From: Anthoceros angustus | Taxonomy: Eukaryota > Plantae > Anthocerotophyta | Reading direction: 5' to 3' | Length of the DNA: 52,761 bases | Assembly: GCA_010909165.1 (NCBI GenBank) | Contig: VJWM01000338.1 | Span: 1 to 52,761 of the forward strand | In this document: positions 9,111 through 45,800 of the stretch, one piece after another | How the letters are laid out: each line of letters starts with the position of its first letter | How positions within the stretch are numbered: position 1 is the stretch's first letter | Program-made: the position numbers and the translations under genes | Notes under the pieces: model-generated | Databases searched by the model: none | What the model saw: the letters and a program-made list of their open reading frames with translations, nothing else | What the model was told of the DNA's origin: nothing

Positions 9111-11917
9111 TTGTATCCCCTTAAGCTTTTTATGCAACGACCTCGACAGCGTCTTCGTGATACAACAATTGACCTTGTTAGAGCCTTTAGAGACTCACTC
9201 AAAGGCTTCGGATGGAAGGAACGGGCATGCATCAGTGGCTGAACACGCCTCGAATCTTCGTTGTCGCCAATGGGACCTTCCTCAACCCGGTGAGCGGGCC
9301 GCGACCAAGATCCGCGAGAAACAAACCGCGGCGTACAGCCGATGTGTCTGCGGGAGAAACGCCCGACATTGGGAAAGAGCGTCGGTTGGATGGGCTTCCC
9401 TCCAACGCAGCGTACCGATGCAAATTCCTAGGTGTTGGAGGAACACCCCGCGGGACAGTTGGCGACGCCAACTGTCGACATCTTCGTCGCGTATCTGCAA
9501 CAGCAATATAGAAAGAATGAATAAGTATCCCACCACATGCAGTTTCAGCACAAGCGTCTACAGTTCCAATATGAAAAAAATCAACTTCAACCTTCATCAT
9601 CAAGACGTCTTTCGGGAATGGCAAAGCGCACTTGACGGGGATGCACAGGTTCAGGTGATGTGGTGGCCTGTACAACAAGTCTCCTCACTTCTCTGACTGT
9701 ACGCGAAGCACGCGGACATTGTGAAGACAAATCTTCTTCCCACTGTTCATCCTAAAACCGGATCCACTTACTGAACTCATAATCCGAAAACAAAATTGAG
9801 GATGAAAACCAAGTAAGCCTTCCAAAAGGGGCGAACTCCAACCTCTTCGCTAGCTGGGGTGTGGATGAGACGCAACATGCTGTGAAAACAACTTGCAGAA
9901 GAACGTCGATTGAGACCACACTCGCCGCGGAAATAAAAGACCGTGGAAGGCCAACAGGCCTTTTGGAAGAGACCTCCAGTGACGAGGAGAATGGTGAAGC
10001 AAGATGAGTGCAAATGGCCACTGTCTCTATTGATAGGCGTAGCGCATAGATGAGGATATTATTTTTTCCCCTGTATGGACGACAACATGATGGAGTTCCT
10101 GATACAGATATCCAACGGCATATCGCGCCGTCCTGCATTTTTATGGTCGACAATGAATGTGCCTCGGCCAGCCGTCACGAAAGTCAACATGATTATGGTT
10201 CAGCAGTAGTTTATATCTGGGTATATGGAAATATGCTGGCATATGTTAATTCAGGCATGTTTTTGGGCTATAAATACCTGTTGGCGAGGAAACCCTAATT
10301 ACTCTTTGTTTTCTCTTGCCACTTTCCATCACGGTGGAGCATTCTGGCGAGTACTTCCTGTGGAGGGAAGTAACGAGGGAGTGTGCTGACTGCGGGTGTT
10401 GTTGGCCGAATTCGAGGAGGTCTCCGAGCAGAATTCCACGCATCCTCCCTTCGCGGCCGCGCGAGCTTGTGATTTGAGCCATCACGGGCAGGCGCTGAGG
10501 GTGGGGGAGACAGGTGCCGGGCATTCCTCAAGTGCATCAATCGGCAGGGTCCGTGGGGGAGGTTCATTCGACTTTCATGTGAACCAATTGTCTGCTTCCT
10601 TCCAATTTCGTGATGTGCTGACAGGCTGCAGGGTTCATTCCTTGAAGATACGTACAACGTGAAGGTTTTTTAGTGCCCTGAAGCTGACACTGCTGCGTGA
10701 CGCAATGAAGTACATTGTCTAGAGGGTAATGTCTCGGACCTTGTGTGATGCTTCATGAATGTAGAAACATTTGTATTGTGGCACAAGCAAATGTACAAGG
10801 ATTGATGATGTGTGCATACACATCTTCCTTCTCAAGCTCACTACTTGTATGTTACCCTGTATATATGTACAGTTAAGACTGAGGTTGCTTCACATCAAAG
10901 CACACGGTTGAAGAGAAGCTGGTTAAGGTGGTGCTGCATCTTAGCGGAGGGGGAGGTCCAGCCGTCGTTGTCTGCGTAGAGGTAATATGCGACTGGCATT
11001 GTGCAAAGACGTGTTTGCAGGTGGGGCAGCCGATGGAGTGAAGACATGCTGCACCAGCTGTTTCATGTTGAATCCACTACAGCTCGGATGTCGTGGGCCG
11101 CTTCCTCCTTGCTCTTCTCCGGGTACTCTTTCATATGAACAACCATACTGTTGATTTCCGATATCCCACTCTGTGACGGTTGCCGACAAAGGCGCAGCAA
11201 ATTCAGGATTGAACGGGTCATGTATGAGGCTGTGATTAACGGAGTCTGCAACCTTCAGTTGACGCATGCGCAATATTATCGTACCTGGTAAGATCTGACG
11301 TCGTTCAAGAGGCGCACCACAGTCCCAGCCTTGATGTTCAGGTCGTGGTACTCCGAGTTGATGGCCTCCTCGCTCAGTTCCACGCCGGGTATCAAGAAGC
11401 CAGGTCCCAGACTACAGAGCTCCGCCGATGCAGATTGCGCCGACTGGGATGAATTGGTCCCAGGTGGGAATAATGCCATCCCGCTTCCACTTGGCTCGGA
11501 TCGTCACGCATTCACGTAGCGTTGCAACTGCGCGTGGGATGTGAGATAAGCCAACGCAGAAGCGAAGTATCAGGCTGTTAGGAATGTGAAAGATCTCTAA
11601 TTCACTCACCGATGCGACCACATGCCTGCTCATCGCGGCCCTGCTCCTTGGATGCTTTGTCGGCTATCTCAACGATGGTGTCGTAGATGCCCATGAAAAC
11701 GATGCGCTGCCTGAGGTTGGTGTGGTCGATCATGGACGGGTCCCAGCTGCAGACATGTGGGATGCACGCAAGGGGTGAGGAAACCAAGCCGGTCCGGTCA
11801 TTGAGTATGGTTGTGGATCCGGATGATGGGCTATAACGGTACCTTTGGTGGCAGCCTGGAACCGGTCGAGCTCGTCCTGGGGAACTCCCGGACAGGTGGT
11901 GTAATCGTCGAGTAACA

Positions 11918-12734
11918 AAAGGCATATAGTATAAACTTAATTCCTTATACACATGAAATATTATGAAAAGAATAGAATAAAATTGTAAGATTCAAACTCG
12001 ATGTGGATCATAAAATGCATATAGTATGAACTCAATTCCCTAGACAAATAAAATGATTGGATTAGAAATATAACACCTATACATCAGCTTTTCTTTTTTC
12101 TTAGAATGGGTACTCCTTTAGCGATATCATCGTTGGCTTTTTCATTTCTTTTTGGGACGTGGTTGTTGGTCATGTGTGTTTTGATGGGTGCTCTCATGCA
12201 TCCATAAAAGCAAAATAGAATACAAAGTTAGGATTCCCTTAGCATATAGGTAGAATATTACTACTAGGAAAGGAGTGGTATTATCACACTTATATCACGG
12301 TTTATGTAGCCTATTATATACGATCTTGTCACACTTTTGGAATGGTGGAGGTAAGGTAACCGAACCCCTTGGTGGTGTAATGCTTATTACTTCGGCACTA
12401 CGCGAAAGCATATCACCTTGTCCGAGTGTGCATTGGCCCGGGCGACACTAGACTACTGTGATTAACAATGCCTTCCGTTTCTATTTTGGCTTTGGATTTC
12501 TACTGACAATGACTAAAGGCATATAGTATAAACTTAATTCCTTATACCATGAAATTTTATGAAAACAATAGAACAAAATTGTAAGATTCAAACTCACATC
12601 GATCACGAATGCATATAGTATGAACTCAATTCTTTATACAAATAAAATGATTGGATTAGAAATATAACATCTATACATCGCTTTTCTTTTCTTCTTAGAC
12701 CGAGTACTCCTTTAGGGACATCATCGTTGGCTTT
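11918..12734. repeat. ~220-bp imperfect direct repeat x2 (11918-12140, 12515-12734) around a 374-bp spacer
   Basis: Both start AAAGGCATATAGTATAAACTTAATTCCTTATAC and end CATCGTTGGCTTT; no TG..CA ends or PBS seen. Confidence 0.9.
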
Positions 12735-12779
12735 GTCATGACTCAAGAGGTCATTGATTTGCGATGTCGATTAATAATT

Positions 12780-14000
12780 ACGGACACCATGCACCCTCAC
12801 ACGGTCGCACACTTGCGGCAGTAAGACAAGCACACACAGTCGAGATTTGTTCCATTCCTTTCCAGTTGTTTTAGGCCATAGAGACCTTTGATTAGCCTAC
12901 ATACCATGCCTTCTTTGCCTTTGACCTCATAACCCGCAGTTGTTTCATGTATATTTCTTCTTGGATGCGTCCATGCAAATAAGGTTTGACATCCATCATA
13001 TGAAGATGTAAACCATGTTGGGTGACAAGGCAATTATCATTCTAAAGGAGGCAAACTTTGCTCGGAGCATAGGTAGCCGGTATGTAGTCTAAACCCGATA
13101 TGGGTAAAACCTCGCTACTAGTCTTGCCTTGTATCTCTCAATGGAACCATCGCTTACGCTTAATTTTGAAGACCCATTTGCTCCCTATTTTTCTCCCTCA
13201 CGGGTGGTTTGACTAATTCCCATGTAGAGTTCTTAACTAGGGAATCATACTCGAGTCCACCGCGCTGCTTTCCATAAATCCTTCTCGAGGAAAAGCTTGT
13301 TTCAAGGTTAGCTCTTCGTGATCAATTGTAGCTTTATAAACAACTTGATGAAAATGGGAGAAAGGTGAGGAGGGATCATCAAAAGTGGTAAGGTATCCTA
13401 AGGGTGGTTCCTTTCATCCCGCAGCCCAGAGCAGTCGGTTCTTAGGTTGTACCTTAGTGCAGTTGTGCATCTTCGTTGATGACTTGTTCTAAAGAGTTTT
13501 CTTCTTCTTCATATGCTTCAGGAGCTGGTTCAACTATAGGGGGAACCGGCTGATCTGCATCCAGATATTCAGGCTCGAAAAAGTCATCATCCGGGATATC
13601 ATGAATATCGTCAAGGTGTTGAGGAATTTCCATGTCTGGATCTGGAGTAGTGGGTCGTCGTGGAGAAGGTGGCTCCTCCTCCTCCTACAATATAGGTTCA
13701 ACCAAAGGAGAGGAAGGAGAGTAATGTAGGCTAATAATGAAAGATAGTAATTTTATTATATAAGAATTTTTATTTGTATGATATATTTTAATATAATGAT
13801 TTTTTATTTTAACTTTATTCATAATTTCATTAAACCACTCTTGATTGCCTCTTTCTTGTGAAAAGTCTTCAAGCCATGCAAGCGGCCATGAAATTGATGT
13901 AGTGAAAGAGATTGGAGTATATCGCTACGTGTTTAGCCAATGAGTCTTTGTTTTGGTCATTGTCATAGCATGGCATAATAGCATCGGGACAATTTCTTAT
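12780..14000 (-). mobile_element. Ty1/Copia pol fragment (RT N-terminal half, possible pre-integrase remnant)
   Basis: IGSKWVFKIKR..GSIERYKARLVAR, GLDY..TYAP, YEVKGKEGMVCRLIKGLYGLKQ. Confidence 0.85.
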
Positions 14001-14179
14001 TCTATAGCTACGCATATTATAGTTACTAAATCGCATGTTAGAATCTTGACGGGTTCGACCCCGATTTACCCTAGCTCTAAGCGGGCTGCTCAACGTGCTT
14101 GTGGGACGACCACACCAAGGGTGCGAATGTTTTGAATCATGAGCCAGAGCAAGGCTGAACGTGGCCTGAGGCGGAGTGT

Positions 14180-15215
14180 GAAGATGGCGGCGTGCGACAA
14201 GGAAAATTGGCATTTAGGGCTGGAAATAGCTATTGTTGAAGTCCCACCTTGCAGCGCTGTCCATAGGAGAGAACTCCTAGCCTGCAGGGCAATGGACACC
14301 CGTTGCCTGAAAGAAGCCATCACACAAGAAAAGGGGGAGACCAACCGCATTCCTGCGGCTGTGGTAGGCTTTAGCACAGGCCTTGATGAACCTAGAGAAG
14401 TCCTTGCCCATGGCCCCGTGAGTCTCGATGGCAAGGGGGATGAAGGCGTGGCCCACCTCCCCTTACTTTTCCACTACGTTCTTCCTCAACCACTATAAAC
14501 TAATAGCCGCCTAAAGCCCGATTAACCTTTGGCCCTCTTTAGGAGTCGTCGCTCTCGTGGCAGCGCATTGTACTCACGCATCACGCCCGTCCGACGCCAT
14601 GTTCTCGGCGAGGGGACTAGGTTTCCGATGTGGTCGTGGTGCATTATGACCTTGCGGCGGCGTGCAAGCACGTCATCATCAACCCTCCGGGTTGGGTGGC
14701 GGAGAGATGCGCGACGAGCTCACAAGTACTACGTCGTAGCCCTGACCCTCATGGGTGTGGACCTATAGTCGTGGGGTGTCGTTGTAGTGCAGGCGGTGAT
14801 TGACGGAGCATGGTGAGGCGTGGTTGCTCGTGGAGTGAGTTGAGGTTGCTCGGTGAGGGAGCTTGGGGTGTGAAGAGGTGTGTGGTTTGTGCCTTGGATC
14901 TGGTGACCGACAAACAAGAGTCTCATGGGACGAAACCTATTGTACTTAGCGACAGTGGGATAAGTGTGGCCACTAGAGGGTGAATCTCGGAAGCCCCGGG
15001 ATCTGCCTCCCACACTCCTCCTCATCAAATCGGGCCTTTACCTCTTCCTCTCGCCGCCCTTGCACACTGAGCCATGTGAGGGCCAACGCAGCTTGGTCCA
15101 ACAAATCTGACTGGGCCCGGATCATAGATGTGGTTAGTTCCTGCAAATCCACTTGTTGAGGAGGAGGCCAGATGCCATTCCCTCAAGCACCTTCCTTCCC
15201 AATAGGGGTGCGCAC
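14180..15215 (-). mobile_element. CRE-like (RLE-type) non-LTR retrotransposon, decayed 3' part, abutting and truncating the diterpene synthase
   Basis: GHAFIPLAIETHGAMG and FRQRVSIALQ, typical of the C-terminus of restriction-like-endonuclease non-LTR elements; PIGK.G remnant at the junction. Confidence 0.65.
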
Positions 15216-15229
15216 TCTAACCAATTATG

Positions 15230-16586
15230 CCGTCGACCCAGCACGAGAACTGGTCTCCTTGCAGAAAGCCTTGAACACATCTGCATGCACAGTAGACAAG
15301 TATACAGTCACCAAACGTCTAGGATAAGCGCTAGCGCAAGCAGGCGCAAGGATCAAACCTGCAGAAACGGGGTAGCCGTGCTGGCGCAGTAGGCGGAAGC
15401 CCATGCTGGTGTCGTCCAGGTCGGTGACGTTGCAATCGGTGGCCCAGCTCAGTCCCCGTTGTGTCCAGCGCTGGAAGGCGAAGTCCAGGATGTCCTTGAT
15501 CTCGGGCTTGAAGTGGCGCGCGATTCCCAGGCGCTGCAGCCGGTCCACGATCCACAGCCGCTCGAAGATGTCGACAGGCGAGTGGTTGGGGATAACACCC
15601 CGTCGTCTCCACCAGCAGGGTGAGGTACTGCAGCGCCTTGCTGTCGCCGGTGTGCATGTACAAGCAGGCGGTGGAGGCCGGAGAGGTGAGCATGTGGCCG
15701 GCCGGCGACTGCAGCCTCCGGATCTTGTCCCAGTCGATACCCTCAGGGCATCCATCCCTTCCAGTGACGCCAGCAGCGTCGTGGGCTGCGACTGCAGCAA
15801 CTGCACCGGGATCTCCTTCAGCTTGCGCCGCTCCCGCAGAATAGTGATGGTGGCTGGCGCGTCGTACGGCAGGTCCAGGTCCAGCGCCCGCGCCCGCTCC
15901 AGCATGGCCGGGAACACCATCTCGAACCCCACGGTCCTGTGGATCTCGGCCTCGGAATCCACCTGGTGCACGTGCTCCCGGATGAATGCACACCCCCGGC
16001 GACCCGCATCGGGATGCGCGCTCCACGTTCGCAGCGCCAGCACGCACGCTAAAGTCGCCACCAGTCGGTCGTAGACGTTGAACAGGTGCGCGTCGCCCGC
16101 CCAGCATCCGTCGGGAAGCTGGGAGCGCACCACCCACTCCAGCGCTGCAGGAAACTGCGGCCCCGCCGCGCCGCCCACCGCCGGCACCATGGCCACCCAC
16201 GCCGCGTCGTATGGGCTCCCGGAGATGGCCCCGTCCCCGAGCGACCGCAGCATGCTCTGGATGCTCCGGATCGACTCCTGGACCTCCACCACCGCCGGAT
16301 CCGGCACTGGCCGCTCTAGCTTCTGCACCTCCAGGTCGAGCCCAGCTTGTACATCTGCGGCCAGAGCTTGCAGCGGCCCGACTCCGGACGCCTGCCGTGC
16401 TTGTGCCGCCTCATACTTGCCTGGTCCACTACTTCTCTCGATCGAAAGCACGATGCTTCGCGGAAGTTTTCCGGGCCGGCCAATCTGGTAACTACTGCTC
16501 CACTCCGGCAGAGGTACACGGCGTTGCAGAAGAGAACTCGAAGATGCCCCTGCTGCTCTTGGGACACTCGGTGCAGCCATTGCCAT
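15230..16586 (-). pseudogene. Class II diterpene cyclase (CPS-like; transit peptide + gamma + partial beta domain), frameshifted and 3'-truncated as assembled
   Basis: SPYDAAWVAMVP, QLPDGCW, GFEMVFPAML, PTTLLASLEG, IDWDKI..LQSPAG, SPASTA, FERLWIVDRLQRLGI, DLDDTSMGFRLLRQHGY (DxDD at 15411-15422); 78-nt GT-AG intron 15358->15281 at the usual GYxVS|DVF position; frameshifts near 15744, 15600 and 15257. Confidence 0.9.
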
Positions 16587-16669
16587 GTTCAGAAGATTAT
16601 TGAAATGGGCCTCAGGAGTGAGTGAGGAGATACCGGCTCTGTGCTGAAAGACAGGATTCTAGCACTTGC

Positions 16670-16676
16670 TTATATA
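16670..16676 (-). promoter_or_regulatory. Putative TATA box of the diterpene synthase
   Basis: TATATAA on the minus strand about 85 bp upstream of the ATG at 16586. Confidence 0.5.
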
Positions 16677-16899
16677 GAGCCAGGCCTGCCGGGGGCCTAT
16701 TAGCTACCTCAATCACACAAGGTTCGTGGACGGGGGGAATCCAGAATTCCGAAATCTCATCGACTTCCTCCAAAGTGACCGAATGCCGGTCCTGTCTCGA
16801 ACTTATAACCTGGATTCTGGACTCCAACTTATTACCACCTTGATTCTGTACTCTATGTTGTACTTCATGCGTTTAACCTAGTCTGTGAACGTTTTCAGG

Positions 16900-17778
16900 C
16901 CCGTCGCCTAAGGCTAACGCAAACTTAATGAGCCCTGCCATTCGTACCGCCCGTGTGGCCACGCACCCCGATGCAGAGCCGAGAGGCATGAGGCCGGCAT
17001 GCGGGCATGCCTCTCTTTCTTTCCGGTGTCTCCCTTACCGGCAACGGGGCGTCCGTCGTCTCTCCTCTCAACGGCTCCCTCCACCCTCCTCTCAACGGCT
17101 CCGTCCGCGCTCCTTTCAACGCCGTCCTTCCGCACCTGCTCACCCGTCTGTGGTCTCAACCTGTTTCCCCATCCCTGTTCTCGTTCCTTATGCGCGCCAA
17201 AACGAACGTTTCAAGTATTTATAACCCAGTTCTAATGCGGCTCAGTTCAGAGGAAGCTTGACGGGTACGATCGAGCAAGCGAGCGGTAGTCTCTCCAAAA
17301 TTGTGATGTCAGCGGAATGGAACATTTGCCTCACACTCAAGTGCAGACACCGGAGCCCGGCATCTTCACCAAGGAGCATTTGTCATAGGCTGTAGGCAAT
17401 CATCGAGGGAAGATGAAAATGCACATGAATGTGAAGCGCGCTTACATTCCTGCTGACCGTGTAGCTGATTTTATTGCAGGTGAGAAAACATAATCTATTA
17501 CAGTATGTTCAAAATGAACAGGACAGTGAGAGTTCGTGATCGAGTGCTTGGTGAACAGATTGAGACCAGAGATGGGTGACCATAAAGAGGAGCGCGGACG
17601 GGGCCGTTGAGAGGAGCGACGACGGACGCCCCGTTGCCGGAAAAGGAGACGGCGGAAAGAAAGACAAGCATGCCCGCATGCCGGCCTCATGCCTCTCGGC
17701 TTTGCATCGGGGTGCGTGACCACACGGGCGGTACGAATGGCAGGGCTCATTAAGTTTGCGTTAGCCTTAGGCGACGGG
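16900..17778. mobile_element. Non-autonomous Mutator-like element (MULE), 879 bp
   Basis: Long TIRs (~16900-17165 and ~17555-17778, ends CCCGTCGCCTAAGG / CCTTAGGCGACGGG); exact 9-bp TSD GTTTTCAGG at 16891-16899 and 17779-17787; internal AYIPADRVADFIAGE (17440-17484) resembles the N-terminus of SWIM-type MULE transposases. Confidence 0.9.
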
Positions 17779-17900
17779 GTTTTCAGGGCAAGCAGGAATC
17801 TCCGAATAGAAGAGGACGAAGAACCGTACAGCGTCTCGTACGGCCTCTACTACTGAGTTTTCCAGTTGCCCGTGCAATTCTTAGCCTGCTTGTCGGGATG

Positions 17901-18255
17901 GCTCATGGAACACCTAAGAGGTGTTTAGTTGCCATGCCAAGGCTTAGCCTCGAGGGAAAGGAAAGCGTCGGTTAAAAGCTGGCTTAGCCTCGAGGGAAAG
18001 GAAAGCGTCGGTTAAAAGCTGGCTTAGCCTCGAGGGAAAGGAAAGCGTCGGTTAAAAGCTGGCTTAGCCTCGAGGGAAAGGAAAGCGTCGGTTAAAAGCT
18101 GGCTTAGCCTCGAGGGAAAGGAAAGCGTCGGTTAAAAGCTGGCTTAGCCTCGAGGGAAAGGAAAGCGTCGGTTAAAAGCTCATGGAACACCCAAGAGGTG
18201 TTTAGTTGCCATGCCAAGGCTTAGCCTCGACGGAAAGGAAAGCGTCGGTTAAAAG
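17901..18255. repeat. Tandem array: six perfect 40-bp units nested in a duplicated ~78-bp unit
   Basis: GGCTTAGCCTCGAGGGAAAGGAAAGCGTCGGTTAAAAGCT x6 at 17941-18180; flanking unit GCTCATGGAACAC..GTTAAAAG at 17901-17978 and 18178-18255. Confidence 0.95.
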
Positions 18256-18844
18256 AATGTACGTGCTCGGATACTCCATGCCTCCAGGTCGTGACAGAAC
18301 AATGGGCCTGCGGCCCTGCGCCCGTGTGTGCACCAGGCTAGGAATTCAATGCGCGCGCGCAACTCGATGGAAGCCCGCATCTGCATAGCCAGGTGTGCTC
18401 CGCAAATAGTCGCATCTTCATGACGCTGAGGAAAATCGTTGGGGCCGCGGGCCGCGATCGTCCGCGCCGTGCACCCCGAGGATTCTGGGAAAGGAAGGCG
18501 CGCGATTCCCGATTGCAAGCCTGCGCATGCCACAGTGATACTGTTCCTTGTTTCCTTTCCTAGAAAGAAGCGACGCAACGTTCAATGGGACATCCGCGCG
18601 CGGATCCTCTCTGGATCCCGCATTACAGGAGATGCGCGCTGGTTGGATCTGGAGGCAAGCTTGCAAGCACGAGAAATACCCCGCTAGCTGTAAATGTGCA
18701 CCAATATGGACGATCCGCATGCGTGGGTACATAAGAGCATTGTAACAGGTTGATCTGGGCACTGTCGTTGGCTTTCCTTGCTTGCTCACTGTTGAGGGAA
18801 GATCTGTGTGTGCTGTTGGTGTACGTCGCCGGTATACTAGTGCG

Positions 18845-21073
18845 ATGACAGGTGTAGTGGAGCCAGAGATTGCGCCACATGTATTGCAAGATCCTGTGCT
18901 TCTGCTACTCGCCACTGCGCTTGCAGCTGTAGTGGCGCTCGCGTCCCTGCTCTCCATTCTGCGGAACAGGAGGCGGCCCAATCTCCCGCCGAGTCCGCCA
19001 GGGGTGCCGGTGTTCGGGAATTTGGGGGTGTTCGTGAGCACCAGTCTGCCGCATCAGAAGATCACCCAGCTGGCGCACAAGTATGGCCCCATCATGTCTC
19101 TCAAGCTGGGAGCCAAGCTTGCCATCGTCGTCACGTCTCCGGAGATGGCCAAGGAAGTTTTCAAGAACTACGACAAAGAATTTGCTGATCGTCCCCCGTC
19201 GACATTCAAGGAGGCTGCCTGCTACGGCGACCATTGCATGCCATTGCTCGAGTACGGCCCTAACTGGCGGAATCTCAGGTACTCCCATGTGACTCTTTCT
19301 GCAAGCTTTTATCAGTCCACAAGATCTAGCTATATCTCAAGCGCGCGCGCGGCATAGATCGATCCATGTTAGCTAGCCAGATATGACGAATTTACTGATC
19401 ACCCTCAACAAATTCACCGCCGGACTGTTCCGCTATCGCGACCTGCAGGAAAGTTGTGACCTTGGAACTGCTTACTGCCAAGAGGATCCAGCAATTTGAG
19501 GGGGTGCGGAGGGAGGAGGTGTCGGGCATCATTCGTTCCATTCTGGAGGACAACCGAAACGGGGAGCATGTCGACATGGACAAAAAGAGCACCTATGTGA
19601 TCATGAACATTGCCACCCGCATTCTCATGAGCAAGAGATTCTACGCCTACAGCAAAGAGTCCAGAGAACAACAAGCTGCAGGCCGTGAGGTATATAATAA
19701 TACATCAGCTTTCACATATAAACTTGTCATCTCAGGTTCCAACTGTAGACATCCCAGGATACTATTGTCTTGAAAACTTGAGTCGATAGCACCAGCATGG
19801 TTACACACAATTGGTTCTAGATAGATCGCGTTCTAATATCATTGATAGATTATTGATGGGATGTCCAGAAGAATAATCAGACTGAGGACCTGAGCGACGA
19901 GTTTAAGAGGCTTGTGAGCGAAGTGGCCTCATTGGCCAGCATTCCTCTCATCGGGGATGTCATCCCCTACCTGGGTTTTCTGGATCGGGTGCAAAACCGC
20001 AAGGGCAAGATGGTCAAAGTCCACAACAGGTACGACTCGTTTCTGGATGGAATCCTGAAGGAGCATCGAGAGACCCGGGCTGCCCACGTGGGCGAGCCCC
20101 GAGATTTCGTTGATGTTTTGCTCGATCTGCCGCAAGAAGCAGGAGAAAAAGAAGGGGTCCGGGACGATCGCATCAAAGCACTTGTCATGGTAAGAACATG
20201 TACGCCTGTCATCGTGCACCAGTTAAGTCATACAGTCCTGACTAAATGATCTTGATACTTCATGACCGACTGCATACAAGTATATGCATATATTGCTGGC
20301 CTGCAGGACATGATCAACGCAGGAGTGCATTCGACCAGCCTGTGCATGGAGTGGGCCATGGCGGAGCTCATCCGGAATCCTGGCGTCATGAAGAAGCTGC
20401 AGGCTGAAATCGACGGAATTGTGGGCCGCGACAGGCAGGTGATGGAAGCCGACGTTGCTCAGGCCAGCTACCTGCAAGCCTTCTTGAAGGAGGTGTTAAG
20501 ACTCCACCCTCCTGGACCACTGGCCATTCCTCGCCAGTCTAATGAATGGTGCAAGGTGGCCGGCTACGACATCCCCCCCAACACCCAACTCTTCCTCAAC
20601 GTCTGGGGCATCTGCCGGGACCCCACTGTATGGCCAGACCCGCTTCACTTCCAGCCTGAACGATTCCTTACCAGGTAATTAATGTTTCTAGCACTAGAAG
20701 TATGTATGCCTGCATTACCATCTCTCTTCTGTTCAACCACAAATCCCAGACCTCTAAGCTTGTTTAAATGACAAGATTGATATAGAACGTAAACCAAAGA
20801 CACGGTTTGGCCTGCAGTGACATCGACTTCAAGGGCCATCACTACGAGTTTCTCCCCTTTGGAACTGGGAGGAGAGGGTGCCCAGGGATGAACATGGCCT
20901 TGATTCTGCTGAGCTACACTTTGGCCAGGCTTGTGCACAGCTTCGACTGGGCTCTCCCGGATGGGCAAAAGCCCGAAGACTTGGACATGTCCGAGAAGTT
21001 CGAGCTGGCGCTCCCCAGAGCTCAACCTTTGATCGTAGTCCCAACTCCTCGACTAGCAGATCATATGTACTGA
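18845..21073 (+). CDS. Cytochrome P450, CYP71 clan (A-type), 5 exons, ~535-539 aa, apparently intact
   Basis: Exons 18845-19278, 19449-19689, 19869 (or 19881)-20189, 20307-20674, 20818-21073 with GT-AG introns in consistent phase; TM anchor, LPPSPPGVPVFGNL, KYGPIMSLKLG, EVLRLHPP (ExxR), PERF, FGTGRRGCPG (20858-20887). Confidence 0.95.
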
Positions 21074-22139
21074 CGGATTTTTCAATCACTCCGGATTTCA
21101 CTTTGCAATCTGAACTTAGAAAGTGCGAAACCTGAACTAGTTAATGGTAGGATATCTCAAAAGAAATGTGAGCTTACAACTTGGAAGCAAGGACTTGGTT
21201 ATGCAGATATAAACCGGATCTCCCGGATTGCCTCTTATATACATATGGCATACATAAATTTCAAGTCAAATTTCTATAACCAAACTCTCTGTAAATATGC
21301 TTTTAAATAAAAATTCAGCATAAAAATATAATTAAAACTATAATTCGATTCCAATTTATGAACCATTGCAAATGTAGATTACCTAGATATATTATTTGTT
21401 TACTTCTGTATCATCTATATAAGTAAAATATTTAAGCCATATGTAGATACTTAAAAGCCAAAAACACATTCGATAGAATGAGTATATTTGGAAAACATTA
21501 TAAAATGATTCTTTAAATATAAAATAATTTTAATATTATAATTTATATATTCTATAATACTAACTATTATACTATAAAATATGTATATTTAAATAGAATT
21601 ATTTTGACTCCACATGCCTGCATGTATGTGCCTCCTTATCTTTATACAAGGGGGGACCGCGTACTCAAGGCTTCATACGAGGGAAGCCAACATGCCCGGA
21701 TTCACTAGAACTATTTAAACACACCACGCGAGGTCCGAGAGAAGTCAATCTCGGATGTATCAATTGAGCATCTAACTAATTTAAGATGTAAAAACCAAAC
21801 AGTACGCAACATCAATATCATCAGTCAATTTTGAGAAGAACTAAAAGATGTTGGCACAAACATTACCAAGCATAATTTGATCGTCAGTATACTTGTGATT
21901 CCCCAACCGAGGCTTGAGTCTCAATAAGAGCTGAGTTTCTAAATGGGATTGAATGAGTTGATGTTCTGATACGAGATTGGGAATGAGAGATTGGGAAAAA
22001 AATGAGGAAAAAAAATGAAGATGAGAATGGAGTGGTTGAATAACAAGCAAATGGTGCGTTTGAAGTTGTCTGTACATGATAGCTGGTGGCACATGTGGAA
22101 ACTCATGATGTGTGTGAGTCCACCGGTGAGATGAACACG

Positions 22140-42000: not shown

Positions 42001-42859
42001 GAATGCTGGAAATATTGACGCTAAGGCATCCACCGCTTGTTCTCCGATGTCTCATACTAATTTGCCCACCTCCTTGTTTGTTGCTCTGCCGCTTTGCCCG
42101 CGAGACGTGAACCACACCATGCTCCACTCCACCCATACCGATGAGGACACAGAGGTAGCTTCCGAAAAGCGATTGCTCGCTTCAATGTAGTTTATCCGGT
42201 CGTTGTTCCCGACGTGATGTCATGCGGATCGACGAGTGATGGGAGGAACTTGTCCGATACTTGTAATGTCTTGCACTCCAAGCGACACCTACATGCGAAA
42301 AGGAGCATCCGATCTATTTCAAGCGCTTGCAAACTTTGGCAGGGGAGCGACCACATTCAAGTGCTCTTTGTTGAAAAGCTCGTGTTTCATAATTGCGGAT
42401 TTCCGGATGTTTTCCGCAAGCTGTGCCATCGGGGCATGCGGGTTTGCAATGGTAATCATCACCGTGCTGGATGACGGCGAGCTTCACCTTGTATTCGCAA
42501 AATTGCGTGCAGCTCGTGGTGCCAAGGACTCATCACCATTCGCACCCCTATGTGCCACCGACGCCTAACTTGAACTTGTATGCGGCTATGGAACTTAGCC
42601 GAAGACGAGGAGATGCCGCCGCCCTCGAGTGAGCCATCAACGGCAATGAGGTCTCTTCGCCGTGTGGAGTTTTGGGTGCATCGGGGAGCCGATATTGCCG
42701 GGCGACAACGTTCCCCACCCTCCCGTTCACCTCCCGGGCTGCAGCAGTACATATCATCCGAAGCCAATGTCGGAGACATTGCACGAGCGAGCTTGCTTGT
42801 AAACACACGGGCTGGTGTCTCCTTGAAGAAGACCGAGACGGACAGCCTGGAGGATTTCC

Positions 42860-45800
42860 GTAAACCGTGTTGCAACAAAGTATGTATTCAACGACTTTCG
42901 AGGAAGGTTGTGAAGAGAGGCAAAGGTTCCTTAGGTTGGGAAGGTCCGAGTGAGACATTCCTAGAGACCCTTGTAAGACGACCATGGTTCGAATGGCAAA
43001 GACCGTACTCAAGGCACCGGTTCCAATCAAGTGTTGCCCAAATCCTTCGAAGGGTGTATTGCATAGGGTCGGAAAGGTACGAGGAGGTGAAGGGCGAGTA
43101 TCGTTGAATTCACCATGGGATTGTAGCAAGCCAAGCCCGGGTGAAATCCTCTCATGCATTGGCGCTATTGCATGGATGGATGCAACATTTCGCAATTGGC
43201 GTAGCGCCGCCTAATGTTGAAGTCTACAATCTTCGACACTTTCACCAAACTAGAAGTGTGGACACAATACAAATGTGACCTGGAGCAAAAAGGGCTGCAG
43301 TATATTTCGTATGCATACTTTCTGAGACTATGGGAGCAGAACTTCAAGCGCGTGAAGATACCCAAATCCAATCGGTTTTCAACATGTTCTCTTTGCGCCG
43401 GTCTAAAGTTCAACATTCGGAGCACTGGATCGCGACAGATCAAGGTAAGCTCATCGCTCCACACCGTTTTTCGGCATGGTATAAAGAGGGTGAAAGGTTA
43501 GGCGTGAATGATGTGCCATCGATATCTAACGGTGGGCGTTGTGATGGTGGAGGTTGAACCTTGGTCGAGGCAACCGGTTCGGCCCTGGAAGAAGGCGGGG
43601 CAGGCGGGCAGCCGGGTGGGGAGAGGGAGGGGAGGCGCATGCCGCCTCATGGGTGGAGGGTGTGCAGAGAGGAGGCGGCGATGCCGGGACCTAAACCCTA
43701 AAGGAGGTAGGGAAGGCGCGCATGCCACAGCCCTCATTGAGGCGGAGGGGGGGCGCGGCATGCATGGTGCCTGTGGGGGGAGGAGGAGGCTGCATGCGCC
43801 TCATGGGTGGAGGGTGTGCAATGGGGAGGAGGCGGCAACATGCGGGACCTAAACCCTAAAGGAGCTTGGGAGGCGCCAGATGCCATCCCTCATTGAGGCG
43901 GAGGGGAGGCGGCATGCCAGTGTAGGAGGGAGAGGGCGATGCGGGGGAGCTGAGCGCAACAGGACGGTGGATTAGAGGATCAGGGCCGCTGCTACAACGG
44001 TGGAACCCTAGGTTGTTGTGGGGCATGACCTTCCGAGGGTTGCCATCATGCTATTGCCCCCCCTTGACTCGTCTAGACTCGGTTATGTCGATCTCGTGCG
44101 TTTCTCGTTGGTTGGTCTGGTTGCGATGACGTTATATTTCATGGATGGACGACATGATGTTTGGTTGAAGGCGATATATATCGGGACGCGTTGAACAAAC
44201 ATCGCATAAAGCTTATGGAGGAGGCGGAAGAAGTTGACAAAACATCGAGCGAAAGGATACACCGAGCCTCACAAGTACATGTTGTTATGTATCGATGGCA
44301 TGGATCGAGAAAAAACATCCTTACCGCATATACTTAGATGGCCTAAGGAGCTAAAGGAAGACTGCCGTGTTATTGTCCATGTGGTGGGGTGTATGATCCA
44401 CAATCACACGTTCAAGTCCAGGGCGTATCTGCACTACGCAAATTTGCGGAATGATGCTAGTTTAACCATATGCATTATCCAAGATGTGATACATACATAT
44501 GTTGGCTTACTTCCCAAGGTTCTATATTTGCAACTAGACAACACATGTCGGGAGAACAAGAATCAACTGCTGTTTGCTTATCTGAATATGCTCGTGGAGC
44601 TGGGGACTTTTGAAAAAGTGAAGGTGGGCTTTCTTCTTGTAGGTCACACACATGACCGTGGACCAAATGTTCTCGTGTTTTTCCAAACATTTGAAGCACA
44701 AAGAGGCAAAACTCTTCCGTCATGCAGATATATTGAGCAAGGCTTTCACGCCAAACCCAGTGAAGGTCGACCGAGGTTCGGACTTCCGTTCTTTCTCGGC
44801 CTTTGAAAGCGAGGAAAGCGCACGGAAGTTTAAAGTGCGCAAGCTAAACAATCTATCATACCAACACCGGTTCAAAATCACGGGAGGAAAAGTCGGGGGT
44901 AAAATGCTTATTCGAGTAAGCGATGACCTCACCGTTATGGGAAGCGATGGGCTGGAGTTCTTGTCTTTTATTCCAAATCTTTGAGATTGGACCTACAACC
45001 ACTAGCTCTGAGGCCAAGGACAAGAAAGGCGTTGATGGAAGCCTCACCGCGAGATGGAGTAGACCACTTAAGAAAGGGTTTGCAAAAGCGTCAACATATC
45101 TAACATGGTGAGGAGGTGGTGGAGTGACTTGGGAGGATCAAGAGGAGATCGCAACTATTGTGGACAATAACATTTATGCGAAAAGGCAGTGGAAGTGGTA
45201 TAGCGGATCTGCGCAGATGCACTTGTACCACTGCAGTTCGGAGGAGGCTATATTGGCGAAGCCTTATTGCGAGGCGTGCCTCACGGGACATGTACTTGGG
45301 TGCTTACAGTGTGGAAAGGCGGGAACAAGAGGTCGAGCGGATGAATGGTGACATCATGGAGATAAAAAGGTATGTTTATTGTCACCTTGTGAGGGGACAC
45401 TCTGTGGCATTACAGGTTGCAAAGGTCTTGAGTGTGCACATGACCCATGACCTACTTCAGTGCGGTGGCGAACCGAGCACACCATGCATCTGAGGGCAAG
45501 TATGTGGGAATACTTTGTTAGGACCGGAGGACGAGAACTACCTCCTACCAACAAAGGTGCAAAAGCATGGAAGCCTCCCAACATTCGAAGTTGTTTGTCC
45601 ATAAGGCAGTCATTGTGTACTATGGGTTCAATCTCACTTCTAGGAAACATCATCTGTGGATAAAAAGCTATCAAAGAAGTTAAGTGCCCTCGTCCCCATC
45701 TTCAACCTGCACTCCCTCGGTGGGCGAGGATGATGGGGATAGCAGTCTTGGGCATGGAGAAGGACGGTCTCGAGTCGGTGAGGAGTGAATAACCGAACGG

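Follow-up and report, generated by a model that had tools for sequence, protein, structure and literature searches.

Does a class II diterpene synthase gene that faces a cytochrome P450 gene in the hornwort Anthoceros angustus mark a diterpenoid gene cluster, and is the pair still alive? The two genes lie on contig VJWM01000338.1 (assembly GCA_010909165.1), within a stretch of 52,761 nucleotides that was analysed as a whole and is called the window hereafter. The original prediction saw in them a candidate cluster for a specialised diterpenoid pathway, expressed from a shared bidirectional promoter. Linkage of diterpene synthase genes to P450 genes has ample documentation from seed plants and is also known from one moss, and to our knowledge the diterpenoid chemistry of hornworts is almost unknown. 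The explanation that we favour, with a probability of about one half, is that the window holds an inherited divergent synthase-P450 pair in which the P450 is live and the synthase copy is truly broken, the intact synthase message seen in RNA coming from a paralog.

The divergent pair and its P450 gene

The head-to-head layout was found as described: the synthase start codon stands at 16586 on the minus strand and that of the P450 at 18845 on the plus strand, 2258 bp from ATG to ATG. Searches for both genes were run exon by exon, and the spliced P450 and an RNA-corrected synthase exon were used for checks of frame and motifs. Public contigs of four sequencing runs were compared with positions 15200-21100; two of these runs, X1 (DNA) and X2 (RNA), derive from the same sample, organism A. 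The runs were compared as assembled contigs, for which depth, transcript ends and absences are weak evidence. The closest relative of the synthase was found on L001, a genomic Logan contig of 3887 bp from run SRR33208241, which encodes the synthase P0001.

The comparison with L001 indicates how old the arrangement is. The window synthase is 72% identical to P0001 in protein and 85% identical to L001 in DNA over 16593-15232, and the start codon is common to both. The far end of L001, on the opposite strand, is homologous to window positions 18336-18923 (69%). The homologous stretch takes in the opening 26 codons of the P450, where 20 of the 26 residues are the same. In another genome or copy, an intact-looking synthase thus faces the same P450 5' end, at a distance of about 1.3 kb from ATG to ATG, and conserved linkage, which had been proposed as a check of the pair, was observed to that extent. 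Given that L001 has an intact synthase linked to the 5' end of the P450, the pairing is a conserved one that was passed on by descent. Within L001 1-120 (reverse strand), the codon at the place of the window P450 start is ACG and an in-frame ATG lies 10 codons upstream; the two P450 copies would therefore probably start translation at different places. Organism B carries copies about 94% identical to the synthase (with exon 2 intact) and to the whole P450 gene, located on separate contigs. Organism C yielded a single 36-nt match at 90% identity or more, and hence no close ortholog to use. Altogether, the divergent pair is not confined to a single copy or lineage.

The P450 half of the pair comprises the following features:

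18336-18844, plus strand: proximal upstream region and 5' untranslated region (UTR) of the P450; an RNA contig begins at 18761, and the sequence shows conservation to the far end of L001
18845-19278, plus strand: P450 exon 1, with membrane anchor and PPSPPG hinge (RNA contig, Pfam)
19449-19689, plus strand: P450 exon 2 (RNA contig, splice sites)
19869-20189, plus strand: P450 exon 3 (RNA contig, splice sites)
20307-20674, plus strand: P450 exon 4, from the I-helix to PERF (RNA contig)
20818-21073, plus strand: P450 exon 5, which encodes the haem-binding FGTGRRGCPG and ends with the stop codon (RNA contig, Pfam)

This is a working gene: intact, spliced and expressed. Its five exons, all of which match Pfam PF00067, join into a complete frame of 1620 nt (539 codons plus the stop) that is free of internal stops. 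A spliced RNA contig of 1927 nt from X2 aligns to it with 0 mismatches and 0 gaps while skipping four stretches, every one of which is a GT..AG intron once the boundaries are shifted; the contig extends some 195 nt past 21100, which represents the 3' UTR. The ExxR, PERF and haem motifs, the N-terminal anchor and the Pro-rich hinge are all present in the RNA-supported frame.

The predicted placement in the CYP71 clan proved sound. In PDB searches, the top relatives of exon 4 are CYP93C (E-value 4.2e-33), CYP76AH1 (7.5e-32), CYP76AH3 and CYP73A. A homolog search with exon 1 gave no match, which is uninformative given that it was limited to proteins of 79-252 amino acids. The nearest named full-length proteins are flavonoid-hydroxylase-like (CYP75-like), CYP80-like and CYP750A1-like; as overall identity to them is 35-45%, the similarity search, which involved no phylogeny, places the protein in the clan and assigns it to no family. 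The P450 thus has the CYP71-clan fold and motifs in common with the ferruginol synthase CYP76AH1 and the isoflavone synthase CYP93C, but the likeness holds at clan level only and the I-helix sets it apart. There, AGVHST (20319-20336) has His-Ser in place of the usual Asp/Glu-Thr oxygen-activation pair. Among homologs (the roughly 150 nearest cluster representatives), 121 of 154 I-helix motif matches have D or E followed by T or S, and His-Ser is rare. Judging from this motif, the enzyme could perform atypical P450 chemistry.

The synthase: family, motifs and breaks

The minus-strand gene does belong to the class II diterpene synthases as predicted, although what stands in the assembly is a remnant and not the whole gene. 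Its features are these:

16587-16828, minus strand: synthase 5' UTR and proximal upstream region; an RNA contig reaches 16721, and a 43-nt block (16786-16828) is conserved with L001
15359-16586, minus strand: synthase exon 1, with transit-peptide-like N-terminus and gamma-beta domains (Pfam, PDB, alignment to L001)
15281-15358, minus strand: synthase intron 1, 78 nt, GT..AG, spliced out in the X2 RNA contigs
15232-15280, minus strand: first 49 nt of synthase exon 2, with one 1-nt deletion after 15256 (alignment to L001)
11911-15231, no strand: 3.3 kb of unrelated DNA; some 780 bp of synthase sequence, from the remainder of exon 2 up to the beginning of the DDxxD exon, would be expected at this place
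11412-11910 and 10898-11209, minus strand: alpha-domain remnants (tblastn, alignment to L001)

An open reading frame (ORF) of 453 amino acids (15225-16586) spans exon 1, the 78-nt intron and the 49 nt of exon 2. It matches Pfam PF01397 (Terpene_synth) in the N-terminal gamma-beta half, and its residues 103-411 match the structures of Arabidopsis ent-CPS (3pya, 7.6e-79), rice syn-CPS (8i6p, 1.8e-77) and abietadiene synthase (3s9v, 3e-76). The identity to the seed-plant relatives found is 44-48%. The DxDD general-acid motif is DLDD (15411-15422), as it is in L001. The DDxxD motif of a bifunctional enzyme is degenerate: DDYTT is read at 11895-11909, and again in L001. With DDYTT instead of DDxxD, the protein is predicted to be a monofunctional class II enzyme, CPS-like (TPS-c).

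The catalytic base is the most distinctive part of the sequence. LLASLEG at 15756-15776 puts an alanine (LAS) where the catalytic-base LHS motif has its histidine, while the asparagine partner of the dyad is retained (PNH, 15576-15593); L001 agrees at both places. Of 81 relatives inspected, 61 revealed the motif; among these, only the window and L001 have this alanine, histidine being present in 15. Hormone-pathway ent-CPS, including the hornwort PcCPS, keep the His-Asn dyad in their LHS and PNV motifs (PMC9169658), where the window and L001 read LAS and PNH. Relative to Arabidopsis GA1 (3pya) and PcCPS, the window synthase is thus of the same fold and family, has kept DxDD and the dyad asparagine and has lost the class I motif in the same manner, but it differs, together with L001, by alanine for the LHS histidine. 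Dyad changes are known to alter the product: an aromatic residue for the histidine leads to ent-kolavenyl diphosphate (ent-KPP) and serine for the asparagine to hydroxy-copalyl diphosphate (hydroxy-CPP), alanine at the histidine not being covered by that work (PMC9169658). As alanine replaces the catalytic-base histidine here, the product is probably not plain ent-CPP, and by its sequence the synthase family has probably neofunctionalised. In this respect, LAS for LHS favours specialised over hormone metabolism for the candidate pathway, as the original prediction had it.

A single exon encodes the first 409-411 residues of the synthase, both in the window (15359-16586) and in L001 (1407-2640). 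Seed-plant CPS genes have several introns in the matching stretch; the hornwort lineage seems to have lost its 5' introns and kept short 3' ones. A processed pseudogene or retrocopy, suspected from the intronless exon 1, was rejected: in L001, too, a long first exon precedes the introns, and the window has retained intron 1, which is spliced.

Scored relative to L001, exon 1 has lost 3 nt at 15827, a single nucleotide at 15743 and 2 nt at 15597. Between the last two, 48 codons are out of frame, which destroys a segment kept in L001 and all relatives. Within exon 2, neither L001 nor the RNA contigs can be aligned to the window beyond 15232. L001 2667-3447 has no counterpart in the window; this interval comprises what remains of exon 2, exon 3, two introns and the larger part of the exon that follows, some 215 codons in all. 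The DNA found instead (11911-15231) contains a weak remnant of a Ty1/copia reverse transcriptase at 12797-13033 (Pfam E-value 0.008, below the curated cut-off) and a 230-nt direct repeat (11915-12145 and 12512-12739); tblastn with eight synthases and the L001 product revealed no synthase coding remnants in it. Homology resumes in the middle of an exon at 11910, and 11591-11910 is 82% identical to L001, with further deletions of 1 nt and 2 nt. As assembled, no uninterrupted frame therefore runs over all three synthase domains. The dN/dS ratio (nonsynonymous to synonymous divergence) between exon 1 and L001 is 0.27, at a dS of 0.26 (315 alignable codons). Such a ratio suggests that the synthase lineage was constrained for most of its history and that any decay here is recent.

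Broken copy or assembly error

Transcription of the locus is best seen at its 5' end. A 958-nt RNA contig of X2 matches the synthase at 15767-16721 with 0 mismatches, and the same interval is single-copy in X1, with a depth of 4.6-9 against 9.6 over the P450. The perfect RNA match and the single-copy DNA together imply that this very locus is transcribed and that the synthase promoter is active.

Further downstream, the RNA and the window part ways. The next RNA contig (15397-15796) equals the window except for ten substitutions (15573-15637), a CC after 15597 and a C after 15743. Applied to the window, the changes at 15597 and 15743 restore the frame, so that exon 1 is uninterrupted and the conserved segment regained, and the ten substituted states are those of L001 and organism B. 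The main RNA contig diverges from the window at 15257, a minor one does so at 15232, and each goes on with proper exon 2 sequence. In the DNA of X1, 15357-15841 is covered by one contig only, at about 3x the single-copy depth. This contig and the window have 26 differing sites and yet agree, including the 2-nt deletion, in the patch 15573-15637. Because of this match in the patch, the window is here a mosaic of the expressed version and a multi-copy version.

Over the slightly longer interval 15357-15935, X1 contigs of about 3x depth differ at some 5% of sites; the frame-breaking 2-nt deletion at 15597 is present in them, and a normal exon 2 follows. The RNA data include a minor contig of this type. 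There seem to be several partial or dead synthase copies with weak transcription.

Under the explanation that we favour, frame-breaking deletions would have arisen in exon 1, and a break in exon 2 would have cost the gene some 215 codons, with 3.3 kb of DNA, in part derived from transposons, taking their place. The alpha-domain exons beyond the break would be decaying, with the synthase promoter still active. The intact, near-identical RNA message would come from a paralog, and patches of sequence may have been exchanged among the copies by gene conversion.

Several observations weigh against a true break and would be expected if the synthase were intact in the living plant. In that event, the deletions and the 65-nt patch would be consensus or polishing errors, position 15232 would be a mis-join or a strain difference, and the pair would be live, which we regard as rather unlikely. 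The main RNA path runs from the unique 5' UTR of the window into an intact exon 2, through contigs with depths of 22.5, 38.5 and about 45.6, and no X2 contig covers 15232-15256 in the form of the window. The deletions after 15827, 15743 and 15256 (-3, -1 and -1) occur in no other data set, being absent from the X1, X2 and L001 contigs (X3: 15827 only). All frame-breaking differences fall where paralogous reads could mislead polishing, and within the patch 15573-15637 the window is letter for letter identical to the 3x paralog contig. Over 16230-21100, nearly all differences between the X1 contigs and the window are indels (about 27 gap letters against 3 substitutions), which resembles long-read assembly error. 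Finally, the stretch compared with read-based contigs starts at 15200, and so takes in 32 nt beyond the junction at 15232.

On the other hand, a 3.3-kb insertion, a loss of 780 bp and collinear alpha-domain remnants make up a coherent dead gene, which is unlikely to be an artefact, and the P450 exons, although taken from this very assembly, contain no errors, showing none of the gap or substitution differences to X1. The RNA path is no proof of a single transcript, since De Bruijn contigs drop rarer variants and may be mosaics of paralogs, and the RNA depths also fit two sources of about 22x. It is on account of the coherent dead-gene structure and the error-free P450 exons that we place a truly broken synthase above an assembly error. 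The differences from X1 nevertheless suggest residual indel errors or repeat-length polymorphism in the non-coding or paralog-rich parts of the assembly, and they are a warning that paralog-rich loci of this assembly may hold consensus errors. If the synthase is broken as we propose, the window copy would exemplify the decay of a module in which the P450 was kept and the synthase lost.

Pathway, precedents and surroundings

Whether the two genes act in one pathway is a separate question. Class II synthases deliver a diphosphate, a compound that P450s do not accept as substrate. Before the P450 can act, a class I synthase is consequently required, and none is encoded in the window. In a functional pathway, an intact synthase copy would cyclise geranylgeranyl diphosphate (GGPP) by protonation at DLDD to a bicyclic labdane-type diphosphate, and a class I synthase, its gene lying outside the window, would then cleave off the diphosphate group. 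That the P450 then oxidises the resulting diterpene is possible, and on balance we would not expect it. Both genes are transcribed in one RNA data set, X2, although their contigs come from that single set and their depths are not comparable.

The P450 would be tied to diterpenes through adjacency and clan membership only, a point that counts against a shared pathway. Besides, the CYP71 clan is mostly devoted to phenylpropanoid, alkaloid and other chemistry. The two genes may accordingly be neighbours by descent only, i.e., parts of a duplicated segment in which the P450 serves another pathway, neither this copy nor the intact ones forming a diterpenoid module. The P450 has stayed whole and is expressed next to a broken synthase, and hence does not depend on this synthase copy; its nearest named relatives (35-45%) include no diterpenoid oxidase; the 53 kb hold neither a class I synthase nor any other pathway gene; and the conserved upstream sequence adjoins each gene separately and is not shared. 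We nonetheless consider mere neighbourhood unlikely. The arrangement was kept between copies that have diverged to a dS of 0.26, both genes are transcribed in the same sample, and the solved relatives of the P450 include the diterpenoid oxidases CYP76AH1 and CYP76AH3, albeit at clan level only. Moreover, adjacency of a diterpene synthase and a P450 recurs in plant diterpenoid clusters, including that of a moss (PMC10140866).

At the other extreme, hornworts would possess a conserved, duplicated module in which a neofunctionalised LAS synthase and a lineage-specific His-Ser P450 form the core of an undescribed labdane-type pathway, the window copy being alive and its breaks artefacts. We hold this to be improbable; if true, it would be the first diterpenoid synthase-P450 module from hornworts. 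A full-text literature search returned no description of a hornwort diterpene synthase-P450 cluster, and a recent review holds little on hornwort diterpenoids.

The main precedent outside vascular plants is the momilactone cluster of the moss Calohypnum plumiforme, where likewise a bryophyte diterpene synthase adjoins P450s. It consists of four genes, CpMS, CpCYP970A14, CpDTC1/HpDTC1 and CpCYP964A1, with a demonstrated pathway (PMC10140866). The moss synthase is bifunctional (class II and class I) and yields an olefin usable by P450s, whereas the window synthase is class II only (DDYTT). In addition, the window has one P450, no third gene in 53 kb and a broken synthase copy, and it is known from genes alone. 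In the rice clusters OsCPS4-OsKSL4-CYP99A2/3 and OsCPS2-KSL-CYP71Z/CYP76M, a class I KSL and several P450s are present and the genes are co-induced. These clusters likewise link a monofunctional class II CPS to CYP71-clan P450s, but the window is devoid of the class I KSL partner.

A cluster in the sense of at least three non-homologous genes of one pathway side by side is not what the window contains, as two enzyme genes were found within 53 kb. The pairing of synthase and P450 that the cluster proposal was built on is real and conserved, as attested by L001; the proposal itself is weakened by the defective synthase copy, by there being two genes only and by the missing class I partner. The conserved pair, with a synthase that lacks the catalytic base of the hormone pathway, would offer a cheap entry to hornwort diterpenoids, requiring two genes and a class I partner. 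It also bears on whether synthase-P450 linkage arose repeatedly in land plants.

At the level of our searches (Pfam on the other ORFs and tblastn), the statement that these are the only two host-type genes holds. Among 105 stop-to-stop ORFs of at least 100 amino acids in the rest of the window, Pfam recognised only DUF7869 (three times) and RVT_1 (once). When 20 further chosen ORFs were added to the 105, a weak RVT_2 was the sole additional match, and neither a host gene nor a class I synthase was detected. A tblastn search of the window with eight P450s returned the single P450 and no extra fragments, the one with eight synthases likewise gave no synthase fragments besides those described, and an Rfam search of 10-23 kb returned no RNA family. 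Most of the DNA taken for transposons is unclassified, the other ORFs of at least 100 amino acids being without a Pfam domain. The RVT_1 ORF and the three DUF7869 ORFs are located at 879-1667 and 42462-44843.

The proposed shared bidirectional promoter did not withstand examination. Between the ends of the transcript contigs, at 16721 and 18761, lie 2040 bp, or about 1150 bp once the transposon described below is discounted; a bidirectional promoter would have starts less than about 1 kb apart and shared regulatory sequence. Conservation with L001 is restricted to some 240 bp beside the synthase and some 500 bp beside the P450. From its sequence, the region between the genes looks like two proximal promoters in a divergent pair. 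Two repeats occupy it:

16900-17778 (region 16891-17787), no strand: non-autonomous DNA transposon of 879 bp, with 193-nt terminal inverted repeats that are 93% complementary
17901-18255, no strand: 40-nt minisatellite upstream of the P450, with six perfect copies at 17941-18180

The transposon is flanked by an intact 9-bp target-site duplication, GTTTTCAGG, and is multi-copy in X1 (k-mer depth 57-156 against about 9.6 for single-copy sequence). It is a recent insertion between the two genes.

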